Source of the DNA: Corallochytrium limacisporum Hawaii
Taxonomy: Eukaryota > Protista > Pluriformea
Length of the DNA stretch: 55,283 nucleotides
Reading direction: 5' to 3'
Assembly (NCBI GenBank): GCA_002811645.1
Contig: PDIP01000030.1
Span: 329,236-384,518, forward strand
In this document: positions 62 through 27,600 of the stretch, in pieces
Layout: the number at the start of each line of letters is the position of its first letter
How positions within the stretch are numbered: the first letter of the stretch is position 1
The notes under the pieces: model-generated
Told to the model about the DNA's origin: nothing
What the model saw: the letters and a program-made list of their open reading frames with translations, nothing else
The model's database searches: none
Made by a program: the position numbers and the translations under genes

Positions 62-2221
62 TTATAAAACCAGGTGGCGAACAGTCATACTCTGTTTAGC
101 GGTCCTTTGATATGCACGAGATACCCAGATGTAAAAATTGTCGACGGGACCGTATGGGATGTGCGTATCAATCCAGACGCGATGCTTGGCAATGCTCAGG
201 GTCTGATCCACAATTTGGGCATCGCTTGTCTCGTCCCATTGTACGGCCCTGGTTATGAGCGGTACCTTAGAGAAGAAAGATGCAGTGCTCTGGACTTCGG
301 TGTCAGAGGGGGCCAGCAAATCCCAGAGTCCAGCGGGCATCGAATCCAGCAACAAGTGGACTTGCCTCTCAAGTCCCACGTCTCCCATAAGTTTGGGCAT
401 ACGGAATGACTTGTGGCGTAGGATCACCTGCCCGATGCGTATTCCTTGGCTGCGTAGGGTCGCCAATCGCTCTGTGAACAGCTCGTCACTAGCATACGGT
501 CTACCCCAGATGACGATCTGATTGAAGCCAAGCCAGCGCAAGAGTTCCATGACGAAGATTCTTACATCCTTGCTATTGTACGCCTGAAAATGAGAATCAA
601 TGTGCTTGAGAGAACTGTCCTTATTGCACATCCACATGATGCCCTTACGGCGCTTTACGTACGTCCACACGGGATTCACCTTGTCATCTTCGGAAAAGCA
701 TGGCAGGAACGAGAACAGGCTTCTCCGTGTCGCTGTAGGAGCAAGCCTTTCAATTTGCTCACGAGACAAGGATGGACTCATGACGTAGAAGGTGGCCTTG
801 AGGCCATCTCCACAATGGACTCTTGAATAGAAGTCGTCCACGGCGAGCCAATTGACACTTGATAAGATGTGCAAAGGGTACATGTCCAGCTCTTGGTATC
901 CCAAGACTGCTGATCCCTTCTTCTTCCGGTAGCTGTCCTTCATGTTTGCCCACCAGTCGGTCTGGTCCTCCCAATTTACATGCTCCAGAGCATTTTGTAA
1001 CCGAGTGAGGTACACCTTCACGGGTGTGCGGTCGGCAACGGGCACATTGTACGGACTAATGTCATGCGGGGTTGCGCTGCCGCAGGCTTGCAGTTGTTGA
1101 ACCACGATCTTCATAAAATAGTCAGGCCATGCGGAGAAGGTCTGCTTGGGCTTGATGAGTCCCACCCTCAGGAAAGACAGGGATCGAAACCAGTCAATGC
1201 TTGGGATTACATCTTTCTGCGGAGTGAACCTTGCCAAATCATGCAAGTTCGGAACGTTCTGGGCCTGCACCACTCTCGTGGCCTCCTCTATTCTTTCCTG
1301 GTTTAGGATCTTGGTAACCTGCCGCAAGGCACTCATGTGTATGGGGTTAGATTGGAAAATCGTGAGCAGCTCATTGCTATGGTGGACATCGAATTCGTCC
1401 AGTCTGGCATACACCAAGTGAGGCTTTTTAAAGGTCCACATGGTAGCCTCCAATTTGTGCATCCACAGTGATGCCGTAATATCTTCCGATACATACTCAT
1501 CAGGTCCCTCCATTTCAGTCACCTCTTTGGCAAGTTCGTAGGAGAACCCATACAGCCCCCCCTGCATCCAAGAAGGCCACATCGCACCCGGATAGTGCCA
1601 TTCAAAGTATTTGTCAGTCTGTACGTGCCTTGTTTTTTCTAGATTTGGGTTCGCAACAGGCGACGGGCCGTGCTCCCAGCCGAAATAGATTCTGGGAACC
1701 ATGCACATAGTGTTACGCATGAGCTCCTTTACGCGGTCCAGAAAGACAATCGTGTCATCATCCGTCTTCAGGAAAAATTCGAACTCAAATTCCTCTTCAA
1801 CAAAGTAGTCCACACAGTATTTTGTCTTCTTCGCCAAATGGCTGTAGTTTTCCTCCACAAGATCCACAATGAGAATGTCCTGGAAATACGCTGCTTCCGC
1901 CTGTAAGGTTTCGACCTCTTCCTCGGTCATTGAGCCATCCAAGCCCACTGCAAACGCATATACCACTTGTTCGTAGTCTTGTGCCTCTGAACTTAGCCAG
2001 AACTGCCGCCAGGCATTTCGTTTGAAATGATTCGACCATGTTGAGTGGACACATACAGCAGCCAGATATTCAGCGCCTTTACAGTATGACTTCTGTAGTT
2101 GTAAGGCGGCCAGCATCTGCCTCAACGCCAAGACGATAAATACGAGAACAGACATGTGACTGGCGAGCTTGATCCATTTTCGAGTGGGACAAATACCCGT
2201 CAGTCCTGTGCGTACCTGCAT
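62..2221 (-). CDS. Glycosyltransferase family 31 (beta-1,3-galactosyltransferase-like), type II membrane protein with long C-terminal extension
   Basis: 719-aa ORF. N-terminal hydrophobic anchor (SVLVFIVLALRQMLAAL) and GT31 motifs: 'LQAEAAYFQDILIVDLVEENYSHLAKKT', 'FFLKTDDD' (DxD), 'WPSWMQGGLYGFS', 'SEDITASLW'. True start may be the downstream Met (MSVLVF). Confidence 0.85.
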   Translation of the reverse strand: MQVRTGLTGICPTRKWIKLASHMSVLVFIVLALRQMLAALQLQKSYCKGAEYLAAVCVHSTWSNHFKRNAWRQFWLSSEAQDYEQVVYAFAVGLDGSMTEEEVETLQAEAAYFQDILIVDLVEENYSHLAKKTKYCVDYFVEEEFEFEFFLKTDDDTIVFLDRVKELMRNTMCMVPRIYFGWEHGPSPVANPNLEKTRHVQTDKYFEWHYPGAMWPSWMQGGLYGFSYELAKEVTEMEGPDEYVSEDITASLWMHKLEATMWTFKKPHLVYARLDEFDVHHSNELLTIFQSNPIHMSALRQVTKILNQERIEEATRVVQAQNVPNLHDLARFTPQKDVIPSIDWFRSLSFLRVGLIKPKQTFSAWPDYFMKIVVQQLQACGSATPHDISPYNVPVADRTPVKVYLTRLQNALEHVNWEDQTDWWANMKDSYRKKKGSAVLGYQELDMYPLHILSSVNWLAVDDFYSRVHCGDGLKATFYVMSPSLSREQIERLAPTATRRSLFSFLPCFSEDDKVNPVWTYVKRRKGIMWMCNKDSSLKHIDSHFQAYNSKDVRIFVMELLRWLGFNQIVIWGRPYASDELFTERLATLRSQGIRIGQVILRHKSFRMPKLMGDVGLERQVHLLLDSMPAGLWDLLAPSDTEVQSTASFFSKVPLITRAVQWDETSDAQIVDQTLSIAKHRVWIDTHIPYGPVDNFYIWVSRAYQRTAKQSMTVRHLVL

Positions 2222-20084: not shown

Positions 20085-21818
20085 ATGTCAGGCGCAGACC
20101 TTGGCTTATCGATGGGCCTTCCCGGTGTACCACCGGCACCGAGTTCACCTTGCCCGGCTAAAAGCACACCAAATGTAAGCAGTGACATTGAAACGAAAGA
20201 GAAGACTAGAAAAGAGAGCAATACGCTCAAAGCTCACATAGAGGCGGCATGGGCAAGCTCTGAACGCAGCTACGCGAGCCTCAGGGCGAGTCCCTCCGAG
20301 GTTTACATGGTCTTCATGACCAAGCTGCTGGGGTCATTTTCTTCTTTTCTGGTGTGGTACAATTTGACCTCCTTCCTGACTGAGGAATTCGGCTTCGATG
20401 ACGTTGCAGTAGGGTGGATTTTTGCGCTACTCGGTGTTGCTATGAGCCTTGGAGGGATCCTGCTCGGCAACTTTATCGACACGCACTCCGTCCACACCAG
20501 TTTGTGCATCGGTGCATTTTTCCAGGTGGTCAGTCGCGCGGCATTCTTATTTGCAAGGACATCCTTTACAGTTCTCTTCTCCCTGTTTCTCTTGCTGCCT
20601 TTGAGCGAGGGGTTCATGTGGCCAGTGCTGGCAGTGGCCATCCGTAGATACACGCCGCGACCGGCCCGTACGCTCAGTTACGGCATCTTTAGCGCGGCAA
20701 TGAACCTCGGTGCGGTGTTAGCAGGACTGTTGACTACTCTCTTCCTCACGCAATTTGGATGCCAGGATAATGGTGCAGCCATGGACGAGGCCGAAATAAT
20801 GGGCGATACCGGCGCACTTTGCCCCCCAGAGGACACCGGTGTTCAGATCGGTCACCTCCACCTCTCTGCGAGGCGCCTCATCTTCTTAGCCGCCACAGTG
20901 GCGTCGCTGCTGTACACTTGCTTCATGTTCATCGGCTTCCGAAACATTGAGGTCATGGGTGATTACAGTATCCGCCCATACCAGCCCAAGCAACGTCAAA
21001 TGGTGTCGTATACTAAGCGTGTGCTCAAGGAAAAGAATTTTTGGCGTTTGGGTGTGCTTGTGGCATGCCTCACCATGGTGCGTCTTATTTTCCGTCACTT
21101 GGATGCTACTTTCCCAAAGTATTTTAAGCGTGCATTCAAGTCGGAGGCGTGGGGTGCGGTTATCAGTGTGACTCCCGGTCTGGTCATTTTCCTGGCTCCG
21201 AGTGTGGCCCTGTTCACGAGCCACATGGACCACTATTACATTATTCTCGCTGGCGCCGTCGTGGGTGCCGGATCCGTATTCTTCCTGCTCCTGAATACAA
21301 TCCCTGCCACCGTGCTATTTGCCATTGCTCTGGCCATTTCCGAGGCCCTCTATGTACCCCGTCTGTTCGACTACGCAATGACGGTGACTCCAAAAGGTGA
21401 GGAAGGTCTATACTTGCAGCTCGCCAACATGCCCATGTTCCTAGCCAAGTTGGTGGTTGGCCCCATGGGGGGTTACCTTCTGGAAGCGTACTGCAGCCCT
21501 CGTCCTGACGACCCCACTGATTATTGTCCAGACCCGCAACGTATGTGGTTATACATTGGCTTGCTGTCGGCGACCGGTCCAATAGCCCTAGTCATCTTCA
21601 AGAGCTTCATCATGCCTCCAAATTACAAGGAAATGCTGTATGCCAAGGAAGACTGTTACGGAGATGCCCTAGACAGTTCAGCAACCCTTTCTATCTCTTC
21701 CAAGGCGGACCTGGCGGACAGTACGGAGGTAGTCGACGTTGCGTCCGAGCCCAGTGTCGGTACTACATCCTCTGACTCCGTTAATCAACCCAGCAAAGCA
21801 GAGGATATATACCAGTGA
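20085..21818 (+). CDS. Major facilitator superfamily transporter, substrate unknown
   Basis: 577 aa with ~12 hydrophobic segments in two bundles. MFS motif-A-like 'GNFIDTHSVH' and 'YGIFSAAMNLGAVLAG'. Confidence 0.85.
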   Translation: MSGADLGLSMGLPGVPPAPSSPCPAKSTPNVSSDIETKEKTRKESNTLKAHIEAAWASSERSYASLRASPSEVYMVFMTKLLGSFSSFLVWYNLTSFLTEEFGFDDVAVGWIFALLGVAMSLGGILLGNFIDTHSVHTSLCIGAFFQVVSRAAFLFARTSFTVLFSLFLLLPLSEGFMWPVLAVAIRRYTPRPARTLSYGIFSAAMNLGAVLAGLLTTLFLTQFGCQDNGAAMDEAEIMGDTGALCPPEDTGVQIGHLHLSARRLIFLAATVASLLYTCFMFIGFRNIEVMGDYSIRPYQPKQRQMVSYTKRVLKEKNFWRLGVLVACLTMVRLIFRHLDATFPKYFKRAFKSEAWGAVISVTPGLVIFLAPSVALFTSHMDHYYIILAGAVVGAGSVFFLLLNTIPATVLFAIALAISEALYVPRLFDYAMTVTPKGEEGLYLQLANMPMFLAKLVVGPMGGYLLEAYCSPRPDDPTDYCPDPQRMWLYIGLLSATGPIALVIFKSFIMPPNYKEMLYAKEDCYGDALDSSATLSISSKADLADSTEVVDVASEPSVGTTSSDSVNQPSKAEDIYQ

Positions 21819-21929
21819 GCATCAAGGAATGGTACACCTTGAAGTGACCAGGCAGTGGTCCTTGCGGAGCATCAGAAACAACGATCAGAATCAAAGTCCA
21901 TAGAATTTGGGTTATAGTAAGTCCATTGT

Positions 21930-21935
21930 AATAAA
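21930..21935 (+). promoter_or_regulatory. Candidate polyadenylation signal of the MFS gene
   Basis: AATAAA about 110 nt after the MFS stop, just before the edge of the riboswitch array. Confidence 0.35.
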
Positions 21936-21949
21936 AAAGGTAGTCTTAA

Positions 21950-22036
21950 GATTCAGCTCCCTCCGTAGGCGTTAACCTAATCAGGTTCAAAGAGTATTTC
22001 TCAGCTGTGCCAGAGACACAGCACCCCTGCTGATAC
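21950..22036 (-). promoter_or_regulatory. TPP riboswitch aptamer A6 (most distal)
   Basis: GUAUCAGCAGGGGUGCUGUGUCUCUGGCACAGCUGAGAAAUACUCUUUGAACCUGAUUAGGUUAACGCCUACGGAGGGAGCUGAAUC. Confidence 0.93.
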
Positions 22037-22166
22037 AAAGAGTAACCGAGGTAAGGAATCTAACTAAACTTCGGCCATTAAGAGTCTTGGACTTGATGCA
22101 CCTGAAAATCATAACCGATATGCTGCGCCAGGCTCAGCCACAGGTGACTATGGAGACGGGTCAAAG

Positions 22167-22255
22167 GATTCAGCTCCCTCCGTAGGCGTTAACCTAATCA
22201 GGTTCAAAGGGTGATTTCTCAGCTATGCCAAAAGACAGAGCACCCCCGCTGATAC
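22167..22255 (-). promoter_or_regulatory. TPP riboswitch aptamer A5 (most divergent)
   Basis: GUAUCAGCGGGGGUGCUCUGUCUUUUGGCAUAGCUGAGAAAUCACCCUUUGAACCUGAUUAGGUUAACGCCUACGGAGGGAGCUGAAUC. Contains the canonical CCCUUUGAACCUGA segment. Confidence 0.92.
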
Positions 22256-22365
22256 AAAGAATAACCCGAGGCAAACGATCTTAACCAGCCTTCAGCCACA
22301 GGTCTTGGACTTGACGCGCTGTAAGGCATATGATCTCTGCAAGGCGACAAAAAAGTCGATGAAAA

Positions 22366-22452
22366 GATTCAGCTCCCTCCGTAGGTGTTAACCTAATCAG
22401 GTTCAAAGAGTATTTCTCAGCTGTGCCAGAGACACAGCACCCCCGCTGATAC
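22366..22452 (-). promoter_or_regulatory. TPP riboswitch aptamer A4
   Basis: Identical to A1 over the 87-nt unit. Confidence 0.92.
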
Positions 22453-22552
22453 NNNNNNNNNNNNNNNNNNNNNNNNNNNNNNNNNNNNNNNNNNNNNNNN
22501 NNNNNNNNNNNNNNNNNNNNNNNNNNNNNNNNNNNNNNNNNNNNNNNNNNNN

Positions 22553-22623
22553 TAGGTGTTAACCTAATCAGGTTCAAAGAGTATTTCTCAGCTGTGCCAG
22601 AGACACAGCACCCCCGCTGATAC
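22553..22623 (-). promoter_or_regulatory. TPP riboswitch aptamer A3 (3' end lost in assembly gap; may be the same copy as A4)
   Basis: 71 nt identical to 22382-22452 on the other side of the 100-N gap. Confidence 0.7.
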
Positions 22624-22752
22624 AAAAAAAAACCGAGGTAAAAGGGATCAAGCACACCGGATACTAGACAGGTTTTGGACTTGAAACAATTGGGAAGATC
22701 ACGATCAATGCAAAGCTCAGAAGTCAAGATGACAAGAAGTCAAGGCTAGAAC

Positions 22753-22844
22753 ATTCAGCTCCCTCCGTAGGTGTTAACCTAATCAGGTTCAAAGAGTATT
22801 TCTCAGCTGTGCCCAACAAAAAGACACAGCACCCCTGCTGATAC
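22753..22844 (-). promoter_or_regulatory. TPP riboswitch aptamer A2 (expanded P3 loop)
   Basis: Same core as A1. P3 is GCUGUGUC-UUUUUGUUG-GGCACAGC and the 5' side reads CAGCAGGGGUGC. Confidence 0.92.
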
Positions 22845-22955
22845 AATAGCCAAGGTAAGGGTCCTTACCAGACTTGAAAACTTGAACTAGAATCATCTGC
22901 AAGATCATGGATCAGAACAGCTTAACAGAAAGTACAACACGATTTCGGTTAAAAA

Positions 22956-23042
22956 GATTCAGCTCCCTCCGTAGGTGTTAACCTAATCAGGTTCAAAGAG
23001 TATTTCTCAGCTGTGCCAGAGACACAGCACCCCCGCTGATAC
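22956..23042 (-). promoter_or_regulatory. TPP riboswitch aptamer A1 (first after the stop codon)
   Basis: Minus strand: GUAUCAGC GGGGGU GCUGUGUC-UCU-GGCACAGC UGAGAAAU ACUCUUUGAA CCU GAU UAGG-UUAACA-CCUA CGG AGG GA GCUGA AUC. Has P1 UCAGC/GCUGA, P2, P3 hairpin, UGAGA J3/2, P4 CCU/AGG, P5 UAGG/CCUA with UAA loop and CG in J5/4. Confidence 0.93.
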
Positions 23043-23085
23043 AAAAAAAAGACCGAGGTAAAAGGGATCAAGCACACCGGATACT

Positions 23086-24621
23086 TCACATATCGTAGTC
23101 TGTCTCAGATGGGTCACGCTTCCTGCTCTTGTTCACAAAGTAGTGAATGAATGTAAGCATCGCTACACCGCCCTGAATCACACCGTAGCTGACGAAGCGG
23201 TTGTACGTGCTGGCACCCTTCTGGTTCTCTACGAATTGTAGCAGAGATTGCAGAGCGACCGAAATGAACATGTTAACGGCAAACACGAGAGCAAAGTCTT
23301 TCTGACCCTTCCTTTGCATCATGATGGCCACACCGGCGGCGAAATGGGCAAGCAAGAAGTAGGAGACTGCCTCAAAGATGACGTAGGCAGTGAGGTAGGC
23401 TCCTGGGTTGGGCATCCAGGCCTGGATGAAGAGCAAGGCCGCAGCAATCAGTTGCAACACACCAATCAAGATGGACACATTGGGGCGCATGAGACGCTCA
23501 CCGAAGTGACCAGGCAAGAGACCGGTCACACCACCGAGACCCCAGCCAAGACAGGACACAGCTCCATTCAGTCTCAGTTCGGGATTGCGTTCCTGCCAAA
23601 TGGAAGCACCGTAGCCCTCGCACATCATGATACTAAGGTAGGTCAGACTCCATTGAATAGACCACATGCTATTGTCGAAGGTGCTGTAGCAGACTTTCAG
23701 GGTGGTCCAGAACTCCACGGCCAATTCTTTCGGAGTCCGTCTCTTGTTGGGGGGCGGCACAGCGGCGGCGTCGAGGTCGGGGCTACCAGAGGCAGCTTCG
23801 ATGAAGCTCACACGTTCCTCAAAACGAGACGGTAGTTCCTTAGCCTGCACACCGTTCTTTGCGTTGCCTTCATCCGCGTACCTGGAAATGTCAACATCCT
23901 CATCGCTGCTAGTCTTACGAAGAGCGATAGCCTCACGAGCTTCGTCCTTCTTGCCCTTCGACAGAGAGGCAGAGGACTCGGATACTTGAAAAGTAGAGAG
24001 TTTCGCCGAACCAATGATGCGGACCATGACAAAGATTGCAATGGAGAGTGCAGCGGCAACGCAGATGCTAGCCAGAGAAATCTGCATGAGCACATACAAG
24101 TTGATATCATCGAGACTGACCAGTAGCTGTCCCAAAAGACTTCCAATCAAATGACTGAAGAGACCAGTGCCGTTGACCATACCGGTCAAAGTTTGGAAGA
24201 TATGGTGCGGGAAGAAACGGTAGAGGATAGTGTCAAACGCCACTTTTCCTGACTCGGCCAGACCAAAAGTAACCTGCATGAGCTGCATGTGCCACAACTC
24301 GGTACCGTACAACAACAACAGACGGGTGGCCATCTGACCAACGCAAACGCTAATCATTAGCACCAGCTCATAGCCCAAAATCTCGGCTGTCAGGCCCACC
24401 AATGGCAGAAAGACAAGCCATGCGTAAGTGTACACGGTGTAAATGTCATTGTTGATTTGATCCATGGTGAATCCCTTGTTTTCGTTGAGGTAAGTAGTAA
24501 TGTACGGTTCCGAAGGCTTCATTTCGTGAAAGAACCCAAGGGAAATCACCAACACAACCAGCCACCTTAGGTAAGTGTTGGTGTAGGAGTACAACTCCTT
24601 CAGATCTTGTTTAAGTCCCAT
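23086..24621 (-). CDS. SLC19A: SLC19 / reduced folate carrier family transporter, probably a thiamine transporter
   Basis: 'LGFFHEMKPSEPYITTYL...INNDIYTVYTYAWL', 'MQLMQVTFGLA', 'LIGSLLGQLLVS', 'LNGAV' and 'FALVFAVNMFISVALQSLL' match SLC19A1/2/3 signature segments. ~12 TM with a large central loop. The TPP aptamers downstream point to thiamine as substrate (inference). Confidence 0.92.
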   Translation of the reverse strand: MGLKQDLKELYSYTNTYLRWLVVLVISLGFFHEMKPSEPYITTYLNENKGFTMDQINNDIYTVYTYAWLVFLPLVGLTAEILGYELVLMISVCVGQMATRLLLLYGTELWHMQLMQVTFGLAESGKVAFDTILYRFFPHHIFQTLTGMVNGTGLFSHLIGSLLGQLLVSLDDINLYVLMQISLASICVAAALSIAIFVMVRIIGSAKLSTFQVSESSASLSKGKKDEAREAIALRKTSSDEDVDISRYADEGNAKNGVQAKELPSRFEERVSFIEAASGSPDLDAAAVPPPNKRRTPKELAVEFWTTLKVCYSTFDNSMWSIQWSLTYLSIMMCEGYGASIWQERNPELRLNGAVSCLGWGLGGVTGLLPGHFGERLMRPNVSILIGVLQLIAAALLFIQAWMPNPGAYLTAYVIFEAVSYFLLAHFAAGVAIMMQRKGQKDFALVFAVNMFISVALQSLLQFVENQKGASTYNRFVSYGVIQGGVAMLTFIHYFVNKSRKRDPSETDYDM

Positions 24622-27600
24622 AATGAATGATTAGTTTCTTCTTTCAAGCGGTTCAATTTTCTTAAACAACGCTTGCTGTTCCCGTTATTAGTCTACAAGA
24701 AAAAACCTATTACGTCATATAAGTTTTTCCTCTAACTAGATTGTTCTTTGTCTGAGATTGACAGATTCACTGGGAAACAGTTTTAAATACCAACTAGCAT
24801 GGATTCTCACGGGTTTTAATGACTTTGTGCTCCATGAGGGGCATCGGACTCAACGCCTTCCACAGAAGTGCGGGTTCAGGTGCAGCTGCACAAGGTATAC
24901 GGGACTGTGGCTGCCCCCCGGGGGGGAGCACCGCAGGGAATGTGTGTATATATGAGTGAGAGTGTGTGTGTGCGTCTGTGCGAGCCTGTGGGCTGCGTCA
25001 CCCTCGGTGGTACAGGAACCAAAGGGGCAGACGGGAAGGAAATAGACCAGAGAGGGGGGGGGGAGGAGGGGAGGGGAGGGCCGGGGGTGTGGCTCCCGAT
25101 CGAAGCCTCGCAGAGCGAATAAAGATTTCCTCCCTCCTTCCCCCTTCCCCTCCGCGCAACTCCTCACACCCACACCGCCGTCCCTCCGTTCCCTACGGCT
25201 CTCCCCCTGTGACTTCCCACGCACTGGCACCAACTCCGCCGAAGACTGTCGCTAGTGTCGTATATTTTTGATAGAAATCAGAGTTCTGGGGCTTACCGAC
25301 ACCACCCCCCGGGAAAGGTGTCCCATGTTCTTGTTGATATAACATATTTATGTGAGTTCTCGTTCCCATTGAGTCTTGCGGAGACGGAAGAGACACTGTG
25401 ACGTTGGACTGTACAACCAGAATCCATCACAAGTTCGGCATTGTACGCATGGAGAGTAAAGCGCGAGCGAGCCCAGGGTAACCGCCATCATGTTCTTGAT
25501 GAAGCATTCCCGGGCATGCTCTCTGGCTGCTCCCACTTAATGTACGTCAGAGGCATCCGACAGAGGGGAGTGTGGAGGAGACACAAGGGAGCTGTGGGGA
25601 GAGGTCACATCGTGAGCGGGAGGGAGTTATGGAGAACCCTATCGATGCGCCCATGCGCGTTATGTTTACGGGAGACCGAAACTTCACAGTGCATGGGAGA
25701 CAGTCGCAGAGAGCTGGCAAAGGCGACTGAGGGCCGCCAACGTATGTGTGCGTACATGGCGCGGAAATACCATGGTAGTGCTGATTCCCCTAGTACCATT
25801 GGATCCTTTTGCTGACCTATATAGACCGCGCAATAGATAGCGCAGGCTGCGGGCGCCCTTTACCGTGACCCACCGACCGTGAATGGATTTATGCATGGAC
25901 AATACGCGAATAGTCGATTTGAACGGTCGTGAGGTTCACGGATGTGCGTGTTGGATGGCTTTGCGCGGAATTTCCTTAGACGTGTTGCGTGCTGAGCACC
26001 GAATGCGGAACAATGATTTGAGTCCTGCAACTGCTCGAACCTTGTGATGAACTGCTCTGCTGATCATTAATCACAGGTAGTGGCTGCGTAATGGATACGT
26101 AACATGGATAGTAATAATTGAAATGATCATGTGCATGTGCCGATGTAATTGCCAAGGTCCTCTGATATGTTTACGGAGAGGATGAAGAAACGGATGATGC
26201 TTATGGAAACACACCACAAAAAGTCCAGGGTCCACATCGGAGCCGCCTCCGTCAAGTAAATTTTTTTTCCATTTGTTTCCTCGTTCGTTGCTGTTTCAGG
26301 AATGTGCCATACATTCAATACTGACATTAAGAGAGCTGCCCCGTCCAATCGAAACAGTCGAGAGTGAGAAAGGCGGGCTCGAGTGAGCGAACGGCAGGTG
26401 TGTGAGCGGGAGAGGGAAAATACCATCGCCTACCATCACCGATCGTTGGTAGTGTGTAGAAACGAGCGCCGCAAAAGGGAAGAAATATTAGGGATACGAA
26501 ACGGAAGCTTCCGGGTGTGCGGGCGATTGGAGGTAAAAAAAAAGGTGAGGAGACGGGCGTCCCCGGAGGGGAGGGGGGGAGTGGGGAGCCCCCGGGTCAA
26601 GGAGGGGAGAAATACCTAAACTCAAGAGAGGCCCTAACTCGGAGATGAGAAACAAAAAAAGTGGCTCGAAACCGACCAGTTTCCGGCGATGGACAGAGCA
26701 TGCAGGATAAAACGGAACCCGCACAGGACCCCTCCCCCCCCCACCCAAACCGGACCGTTTAAAATTTGGTTTCGGTGGAAGAAAGCGCATGGGGGTGAGA
26801 ATATGGGCCATGCGCACGGGGACACAGCAGTGTCAGTTTTTCTTTCTTTTTTATTAAAAAAATACAAGATACAGAGTGTTCGGATCATCGCGCGCTGGTG
26901 CGGCCCCGATGCGTAACGGCGATGCATAGGGGTACACACGCAGCAAGGCAGAGCAGGAATGGTGTGAAAAAAAAATCCGCATTTTTGGTGAACGCACGCT
27001 TTGTCATCAGCGTTCGTCGCGTAACTCTTTGGACAAATTTGAGAGGTTGCTGCGCTTGTGCGGGACATCTTGTCGTGCATGGGACCGTTTATTTTGTGTA
27101 TTAGAGCACTGGAAAAGAATGCACGAGGAGGAAGTTTGGAATCGTGCTTCGGCACGCTCGGACGATGGCGTGCGGCTTCCGGCGCAGCAGCCACACAGTG
27201 CTGTCCCAGTGCGAGTGACACTCCACACTTGCGCAAGAGTTTCCAAAATTTGCGGTCGATGGGGTGGCGCAGGGGCTCAGAAGGGGGGGTGGGGGGGCCT
27301 AAGTTGGCCGCGCCGGCGAGACTGCGGACCCTATAGTACTAGTATGAGACCCATTTTCATAAATTTCCGTATATATCGAACATACAGTACGAAAGCATAA
27401 TTAGCTTCCAGTGAACCTGTAGTGTGTGCAGCGGAGTATATAGATAAAGCGGGTCTCACTGGGGGGGGGGACCCGGGGGGGTCTCGAAATTGGCGCGAAC
27501 CCTACTACCCGAGCGGGCAGCAGATGGAGGCAAAAAGAAAGAAGGAGGGGGGGTACTTTGGGATGTGCGCAGGACCGGCCGCTGTGATAGATCCGGGTTG

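Follow-up and report, generated by a model that had tools for sequence, protein, structure and literature searches.

What could a series of riboswitch aptamers be doing behind the stop codon of a transporter gene in a unicellular relative of animals? The question is raised by a stretch of 55,283 nucleotides (hereafter the window) of the genome of Corallochytrium limacisporum Hawaii (assembly GCA_002811645.1, contig PDIP01000030.1, positions 329,236 to 384,518), in which a gene of the SLC19 family is followed by repeated copies of the thiamine pyrophosphate (TPP) aptamer. Riboswitches are regarded as essentially bacterial; in eukaryotes only the TPP class has been validated, namely in fungi, plants and green algae, and for further algae aptamers have been predicted. 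A preliminary description of the locus, made from the sequence alone, had surmised a host closely related to animals, and C. limacisporum is indeed a unicellular holozoan. As argued below, the 3' untranslated region (3' UTR) of this one SLC19 gene probably holds five or six TPP riboswitch units giving feedback on the importer that the gene encodes. All positions are those of the window unless another contig is named.

Scanning the whole window with the Rfam covariance models returned five matches to the TPP family (RF00059), all on the minus strand, which is the sense strand of the SLC19 gene, and all extending over the full model (positions 1-105). They score 66.4-72.3 bits (E-values of 2e-12 to 7e-11) against a gathering score of 54.3 bits, and no other Rfam family exceeded its own gathering score anywhere in the window. 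The first aptamer opens with GTATCAGC, 43 nt past the TGA of the SLC19-family gene, exactly where the preliminary description had placed it. The claim that the complete units are full TPP aptamers on the SLC19 sense strand is likewise borne out, as is the expectation of significant RF00059 matches on the minus strand, a sixth copy being unscorable owing to Ns; the aptamer array is thereby confirmed as real, far beyond chance. The words CUGAGA of the pyrimidine sensor and ACCUGAU and CG.AGGGA of the pyrophosphate sensor occur in every complete copy, and the first two also in the partial one, while CGGAGGGA is, like CUGAGA and ACCUGAU, invariant in every complete copy. The covariance-model alignments place all the helices around a three-way junction, namely P1 (UCAGC/GCUGA), P2, P3, P4 (with one non-canonical pair in all copies) and P5 (UAGG/CCUA); the covariation of P5 relative to Escherichia coli thiM, pointed out earlier, is true and adds little. 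In every copy the 11 model positions of the P3a hairpin are deleted. Eukaryotic TPP aptamers are of the form lacking P3a, and by this architecture the units of the array are eukaryote-type aptamers. A search of the whole genome with RF00059 added a single aptamer beyond the array, on contig C22 (72.7 bits), bringing the total to two TPP loci; this second locus is described further below.

The array occupies 1.1 kb of the minus strand (21941-23044). Between the stop codon and the first aptamer lies a linker of 43 nt (23043..23085), which matches the end of spacer 2 (22624-22670) at 94% identity and contains a U8 tract and a conserved flank motif (23053-23069); this motif and an accompanying box recur upstream of the aptamers and are treated below. 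Aptamer 1 (23044-22947; 71.3 bits) is followed by spacer 1 (22847..22946), and aptamer 2 (22846-22743; 71.1 bits), the P3 loop of which is 6 nt longer than in the other copies, by spacer 2 (22633..22742), with the box at 22673-22684 and the flank motif at 22633-22649. Aptamer 3 (22553..22632, the copy itself starting at 22623) is partial: its 71 nt (22623-22553) equal aptamer 1 and then run into an assembly gap of 100 N (22453..22552), and Infernal gave no report for it because of these Ns. On the far side of the gap come aptamer 4 (22454-22357; 70.5 bits; identical to aptamer 1), spacer 4 (22258..22356; box at 22303-22314, flank motif at ~22266-22280), aptamer 5 (22257-22158; 66.4 bits; with a C.U mismatch in P3, and of all copies the nearest to the second-locus aptamer), spacer 5 (22039..22157; box at 22085-22096, flank motif at 22046-22060) and, at the end of the array, aptamer 6 (22038-21941; 72.3 bits). 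The unit of ~87 nt repeated six times, as it had been described, holds for the aptamer and not for the period: the copies do not stand head to tail, and the start-to-start distance of 197-221 nt is made up of an aptamer of ~87 nt and a diverged spacer of ~110 nt. Tandem Repeats Finder did not report the array, within which a higher-order repeat of 420 nt can be recognized. A 148-aa open reading frame (ORF) at 22281-22727 was rejected as a gene, as it reads through aptamers and the N gap.

How many aptamers there are hinges on the gap, which may stand for the rest of aptamer 3 plus one spacer, for further units or, should the contig ends overlap, for nothing at all. We aligned contigs of four public sequencing runs to the interval 21700-24750, two of them DNA (X1 and X2) and two probably RNA-seq (X3 and X4). 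In X1 and X2 alike, every aptamer interrupts the DNA contigs, none of which bridges the gap. These contigs do, partly together with RNA contigs of another strain, contain five distinct spacer-to-aptamer junctions (from the linker and spacers 1, 2, 4 and 5) and five distinct aptamer-to-spacer junctions (into spacers 1, 2, 4 and 5 and the tail), and there must therefore be at least five aptamers in the array. For the sixth to be real, the partial copy on one side of the gap and the complete copy on the other must be separate units; of the "5-6+" copies counted originally, at least five thus stand, and six exist only as assembled. Taken literally, the gap of 100 nt would give a period of 171 nt against 197-221 nt elsewhere, a rough fit to one hidden spacer. 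The summed contig depth at one aptamer site is 4.0-4.3 times the single-copy value in X2 and 5.8-6.7 times in X1, which does not decide between five and six copies. One contig of run X4, which represents another strain (as shown by four differences in the coding sequence), connects spacer 2 to spacer 4 by way of a single aptamer, but may be chimeric, since its path uses 55 nt common to several copies.

The gene preceding the array (23086..24621, minus strand) is an intronless, uninterrupted ORF of 511 amino acids, and the protein matches the Folate_carrier profile PF01770 with an E-value of 4.9e-57 over profile positions 6-395 of 412. Its best relative in the databases is another C. limacisporum protein from EukProt (Clim_evm2s170, 566 aa; 49% identity), which has its gene, at 100% identity, at another place of this assembly (C199:4480-6177, plus strand; L008) and hence represents a second SLC19 paralogue, ~50% identical to the array-bearing carrier. 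No TPP aptamer was found within 1.5 kb on either side of this paralogue, and the predicted riboswitch units serve only one of the two SLC19 carriers of the genome. The aptamers are associated with a gene of the thiamine-transport type, as the carrier scores 115-118 bits against the solved human thiamine transporters SLC19A3 and SLC19A2, compared with 80-84 bits against the folate carrier SLC19A1. We know of no riboswitch on the animal SLC19A2 and SLC19A3 genes. The animal proteins (PDB 8z7z, 8s4u and 8xv2; PMC11447181) belong to the same Pfam family and align with the carrier over the full length, at an identity of only ~28% to the human thiamine transporters and with an unsure alignment in the C-terminal half. 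When the residues contacting thiamine in human SLC19A3 (taken from PMC11447181) are projected onto the Corallochytrium protein, Glu32 is kept as E38 and the aromatic clamp formed by Phe56, Trp59 and Tyr113 is matched by Y61, Y64 and F119, whereas Glu110, Trp94, Asn297 and Glu320 are changed to Gln (Q116), Arg (R100), Gly (G336) and Ser (S356), respectively. From this comparison thiamine is the likely substrate.

Among the genes of thiamine metabolism, the genome contains thiamine pyrophosphokinase (TPK; C13:49671-50036, 94 bits). Searches of the genome for ThiE and ThiC remained without a match, and THI4 yielded only weak partial matches of the Rossmann type. There is one ORF of the NMT1/THI5 family (C7:11221-11895, 113 bits), with no aptamer nearby. 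Judging by these genes, the organism probably depends on imported thiamine or its precursors, being an importer or salvager as animals are, and feedback on uptake would therefore make sense.

Is the array part of the carrier mRNA? Runs X3 and X4 are probably RNA-seq: their contigs amount to ~13 Mb for a 24-Mb genome, with depths ranging from 4 to 1948, and those with the SLC19 coding sequence extend past the ATG on its 5' side by ~105 nt before they stop, at a point beyond which the DNA contig goes on for kilobases. In each of the two runs a single unspliced contig (23004-24725 and 22988-24730) spans the whole coding sequence with its stop codon, continues through the linker and ends 41-57 nt into aptamer 1, which ties this aptamer directly to the coding sequence. 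Further RNA contigs represent spacer 4, unspliced in both X3 and X4, as well as spacer 5, also unspliced, and the first half of spacer 2 in X4. The spacer 4 contigs, with mean depths of 605 and 189, have exactly the letters of the second-locus aptamer at positions 22214, 22228 and 22230 and are therefore graph chimeras, the mRNA of that locus being 20-35 times more abundant. After a simple mixture calculation, the depth of the spacer approximates that of the coding sequence (62 and 41). Spacer 1 is represented by no contig in X3 or X4, holes in the contig cover being no evidence of absence. In RNA, then, the array spacers are about as abundant as the coding region, which fits, without proving, a single mRNA. 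Of the previous suggestion that the array lies in the SLC19 3' UTR and is co-transcribed with the gene, the part concerning aptamer 1 stands on the RNA contigs joining it to the coding sequence; the part concerning the whole array is not covered by any one contig. Another earlier idea, that the mRNA might act as a TPP sponge, appears unlikely, because the other mRNA with an aptamer (depth 1385-1948) exceeds the SLC19 mRNA (41-62) ~20-35-fold.

The sequences preceding the aptamers provide some hints of an expression platform. An alignment of the 70 nt upstream of each aptamer, including that of the second locus, reveals a conserved flank common to all units and to the second locus. It consists of a box, TCAAGTCC(A)AGA, located ~60 nt upstream of the aptamers, and of a motif, GAT(C/T)C..TTACCTCGG, located ~30 nt upstream, after which follow a U/C-rich tract and GTATCAG, the CAG of the latter lying inside the P1 5' strand. 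A yUnAy-like word occurs in the second block, which also reads like the conserved 5' end of U1 snRNA. Spacer 1 additionally contains a perfect 7-bp hairpin (22854-22869, minus strand; GGTAAGG...CCTTACC), in which a consensus 5'-splice-site word is paired with the flank motif. These features suggest, without substantiating it, that the platform might resemble a splice acceptor or mask a splice site, in the manner of other eukaryotic TPP switches. A different candidate, an anti-aptamer helix between the flank and the aptamer 3' strand, was hinted at by minimum-free-energy folds of three units and is not supported, as the duplex energies are no better than those of shuffled flanks. The splice consensus of the organism could not be derived from the S3Ae and L15e ribosomal-protein genes, both of which, the two that were checked, are intronless.

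We consider the following explanation reasonably probable. The five or six units in the 3' UTR of the SLC19 gene would act as riboswitches in a feedback loop: at a high cellular level of TPP the aptamers would fold around the ligand and expression of the importer would fall, and the presence of several independent units would increase the chance that at least one of them fires. As a best guess, the output may be ligand-dependent processing or decay of the 3' UTR, perhaps with the splice-acceptor-like flank as intermediary. What we infer here is that TPP is bound, in which direction it regulates and at which step the output arises, and feedback is proposed as the most likely role because the organism apparently cannot make thiamine and must import it. 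Several points weigh against this explanation. No single contig spans the whole array, and contigs cannot prove one transcript; spliced RNA forms were not seen in the contigs of X3 and X4, in which spacers 4 and 5 are unspliced; the energies of flank/aptamer duplexes relative to shuffled flanks correspond to z-scores of -0.85 to +1.13; and several of the thiamine-contact residues of human SLC19A3 are changed in the aligned carrier. Thiamine auxotrophy is not certain, because a gene of the NMT1 family exists. Diatom TPP aptamers located in 3' UTRs, equally conserved, gave no thiamine response, and it is from these that the most serious alternative derives its force: the Corallochytrium aptamers might be conserved for reasons other than a thiamine-responsive switch, for instance as structured elements for stability or localization of the mRNA, or their response might take place outside culture conditions. 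The diatom THIC and SSSP aptamers remained unresponsive in quantitative PCR (qPCR), in rapid amplification of cDNA 3' ends (3' RACE) and in tests with reporters and mutants, and for the array, too, attempts to demonstrate an expression platform failed and no alternative isoforms were seen among the RNA contigs. We nevertheless regard this alternative as unlikely, given that the organism looks dependent on import, that no more than two loci have aptamers, a transporter gene of the thiamine-carrier family among them, and that all units and the second locus have the conserved flank in common.

The similarity of the copies could also be explained if only one or a few of the units mattered, the others having arisen as by-products when units were duplicated in tandem, with gene conversion and unequal crossing-over, in place of selection on each copy, maintaining their likeness. 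Pairwise identity is 86-100% among the aptamers of the array (85-100% with the second-locus aptamer included) and 40-51% among the spacers, and aptamers 1, 3 (over its 71 nt) and 4 are identical. The linker plus aptamer 1 and the end of spacer 2 plus aptamer 3 are 94-100% identical over at least 114 nt, and the second strain (X4) differs from the reference just upstream of aptamer 3 by 17 mismatches and 10 indels. Part of the sameness of the copies is therefore due to gene conversion or recent duplication, and this sameness is for that reason no proof of selection on each of them and a further point against the riboswitch reading. The absence of compensatory double changes in the stems of the copies, in the face of spacers at 40-51%, points in the same direction, as does the 420-nt higher-order repeat. 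On the other hand, every complete copy scores 66-72 bits and has an intact binding core, and the variation avoids that core. It is confined to the P3 loop, one P3 pair (the C.U mismatch being common to copy 5 and the second-locus aptamer), two P2 positions that switch among G-C, G-U and A-U with pairing retained, one P5 loop base and the tail; of roughly eight variable sites, one falls within the 41 strongly conserved positions of the model, marginally below chance expectation. The spacers, moreover, have diverged nearly to saturation, and the units are therefore not all young. Selection on every copy is thus plausible from these comparisons, not proven, and we judge the by-product scenario to be quite unlikely. 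That the copy number itself should be an artefact of a collapsed or mis-scaffolded repeat, the true locus having one or two aptamers, is barely credible: the N gap inside the array and the breaking of DNA contigs at every aptamer might suggest it, but the five plus five distinct junctions in DNA contigs of two runs, partly found again in RNA of another strain, and a depth at one aptamer site of 4 to 6.7 times single-copy speak clearly for more. Equally to be weighed is the neighbourhood of the far end of the array, where a gene for a 577-aa MFS_1 transporter (20085..21818, plus strand) converges with the SLC19 gene. Only ~120 nt lie between the MFS stop codon and aptamer 6, and only 58 nt between this aptamer and the point, near 21883, where the RNA contig of the MFS gene stops, and TPP-dependent read-through of SLC19 into the antisense of the MFS gene could in principle make the latter the true target. 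With positions 21884-21949 devoid of RNA contigs in X3 and X4, no thiamine link of the MFS protein and no terminator-like or poly(A) logic demonstrated, we find this very improbable, if slightly less so than an assembly artefact.

Two details of the second strain may be recorded in connection with its divergence. Its four differences in the SLC19 coding sequence fall within 23518-23935, and the strongly different sequence upstream of aptamer 3, which takes in the 3' half of spacer 2 in its RNA contig, corresponds to 22597-22692. According to the table of differences, the 3' strand of P3 differs in an aptamer of this strain, and pairing would persist via G.U pairs.

How does a riboswitch array of this kind compare with known systems? 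The eukaryotic TPP switches characterized so far, known from fungi, plants and green algae, occur singly and all act via splicing. The most similar ones are the 3' UTR elements of plant THIC genes and those predicted, one per gene, in the 3' UTRs of THIC, SSSP and FOLR-like genes of diatoms and prasinophytes (McRose 2014, PMC4260697; Llavero-Pasquina 2022; for plants, Wachter 2007), which have in common with the Corallochytrium array the eukaryote-type aptamer, the position in the 3' UTR and the link to a thiamine-related gene; the algal ones include putative uptake genes (SSSP and the FOLR-like ATS1). They differ in having one aptamer per gene, in belonging to photosynthetic organisms and in being attached to THIC, SSSP or FOLR-like genes, in contrast to the five or six units on an SLC19 gene of a holozoan. 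In plant THIC the processing site is held in a 3' UTR intron, whereas the RNA contigs of the array are unspliced. The switches of fungi, also opisthokonts, and of oomycetes (NMT1, THI4 and DUR31; PMC5882874, PMC5997356, PMC3597705) resemble the array in the splice-like signals adjoining the aptamer and in the control of transporters in some cases, but the fungal ones are single and reside in 5' UTRs or in introns of coding regions, and none of the fungal or oomycete switches is linked to SLC19 or forms a 3' UTR array. The sole eukaryotic double that we found in the literature searched is that of Saprolegnia NMT1, with two aptamers in one leader. Bacterial tandem TPP switches (surveyed in PMC12452182) similarly place several complete units in series on one transcript, which is thought to sharpen or extend the response; they are mostly doubles and rarely triples (2-8% of cases) and lie in 5' leaders with platforms based on terminators or on masking of the ribosome-binding site, unlike five or six units behind a eukaryotic stop codon.

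The preliminary description knew of no described equivalent, and our own search of the literature agrees with it: not being exhaustive (its silence is no proof of novelty), it revealed no riboswitch tied to Corallochytrium, Holozoa or SLC19 genes and no array of more than three copies. In metagenome contigs the exact aptamer pattern had no match, and a pattern with degenerate P5 had five, all of them single, long TPP aptamers (105-123 nt) of bacterial appearance, in contrast to the P3a-less copies of the array; a SAM riboswitch accompanies one of them on its contig. The nearest non-self homologue of the carrier among 1.84 billion representatives is 33% identical, and no TPP aptamer was found on the contigs of five distant SLC19 homologues. 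A multi-aptamer TPP sensor on a thiamine-carrier mRNA of an organism closely related to animals is supported as regards identity, place, lineage and transcription, its function and mechanism being proposals. It would mean direct sensing of a vitamin by RNA beside the animal lineage, on the gene family that animals use for thiamine uptake, and the five or six units in a 3' UTR, having no described counterpart, would constitute a natural test of aptamer multiplicity in a eukaryotic mRNA. The genome is compact and intron-reduced, assembled from short reads with SPAdes (PMC5560861; 24.11 Mb), and Corallochytrium is stably transfectable (bioRxiv 10.1101/2020.11.12.379420), so that the question is open to experiment.

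The second TPP aptamer (C22:17077-17174 = L007:5078-5175, minus strand) ends 8 nt before the ATG of an ORF of 657 amino acids (L007:5069-3096, minus strand), which is 100% identical to the C. limacisporum protein Clim_evm4s22 of EukProt. The mRNA contigs at this locus join the end of the aptamer to the ORF, are unspliced and are the deepest of all those aligned, exceeding SLC19 by 20-35 times. Recognizable in the protein are a signal peptide, four repeats with a weak likeness to PPC/UPF0669 domains, and a membrane anchor at the C terminus; Pfam returned PPC only, below threshold, the ESM Atlas gave no leads other than UPF0669/PPC, and a sequence search of the PDB was without a match. Uncharacterized homologues exist in the starfish Acanthaster and the sea urchin Diadema (42% identical) and in an annelid (39%). 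The aptamer in front of its gene suggests a thiamine-related role for this animal-shared family, and thereby a functional lead for proteins common to echinoderms and annelids. Upstream of the aptamer, between a TCAAGT box and the flank motif, there is a five-codon upstream ORF (uORF), ATG TTT GAA GTT TGA (L007:5201-5215, minus strand), and between the aptamer and the start codon there are two branch-point-like TACTAA words (L007:5073-5086, minus strand). The layout recalls the uORF/splicing design of the fungal NMT1 type, the RNA contigs here being unspliced, and resembles the fungal "type IV" (in the 5' UTR of a single-exon gene, mechanism unknown), likewise beside a short uORF.

Considering both loci together, one may speculate that TPP riboswitches go back to the ancestor that animals share with their unicellular relatives and disappeared on the stem leading to animals; that the 3' UTR array of Corallochytrium and the site 8 nt before a start codon act without splicing, for instance by ligand-dependent mRNA decay or by blocking scanning ribosomes; and that the five or six units form a near-digital, multi-site TPP sensor setting thiamine uptake. 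As a whole, this composite scenario is doubtful, about as much so as the proposal that the aptamers are not switches at all.

Traces of related sequences may exist elsewhere, as a microbial-mat metagenome (X5) and a sequencing run of another organism (X6) contain 7-9% of the sampled words of SLC19 plus the array; these shared words could be aptamers of a relative or conserved coding parts. Finally, S3Ae and L15e, the intronless ribosomal-protein genes mentioned above, have a word in common in their upstream regions, CAAGC(.)AGCTATTTGGATC (L019 ~1330-1360 and L020 ~1390-1420, plus strand), which may be a ribosomal-protein promoter element.

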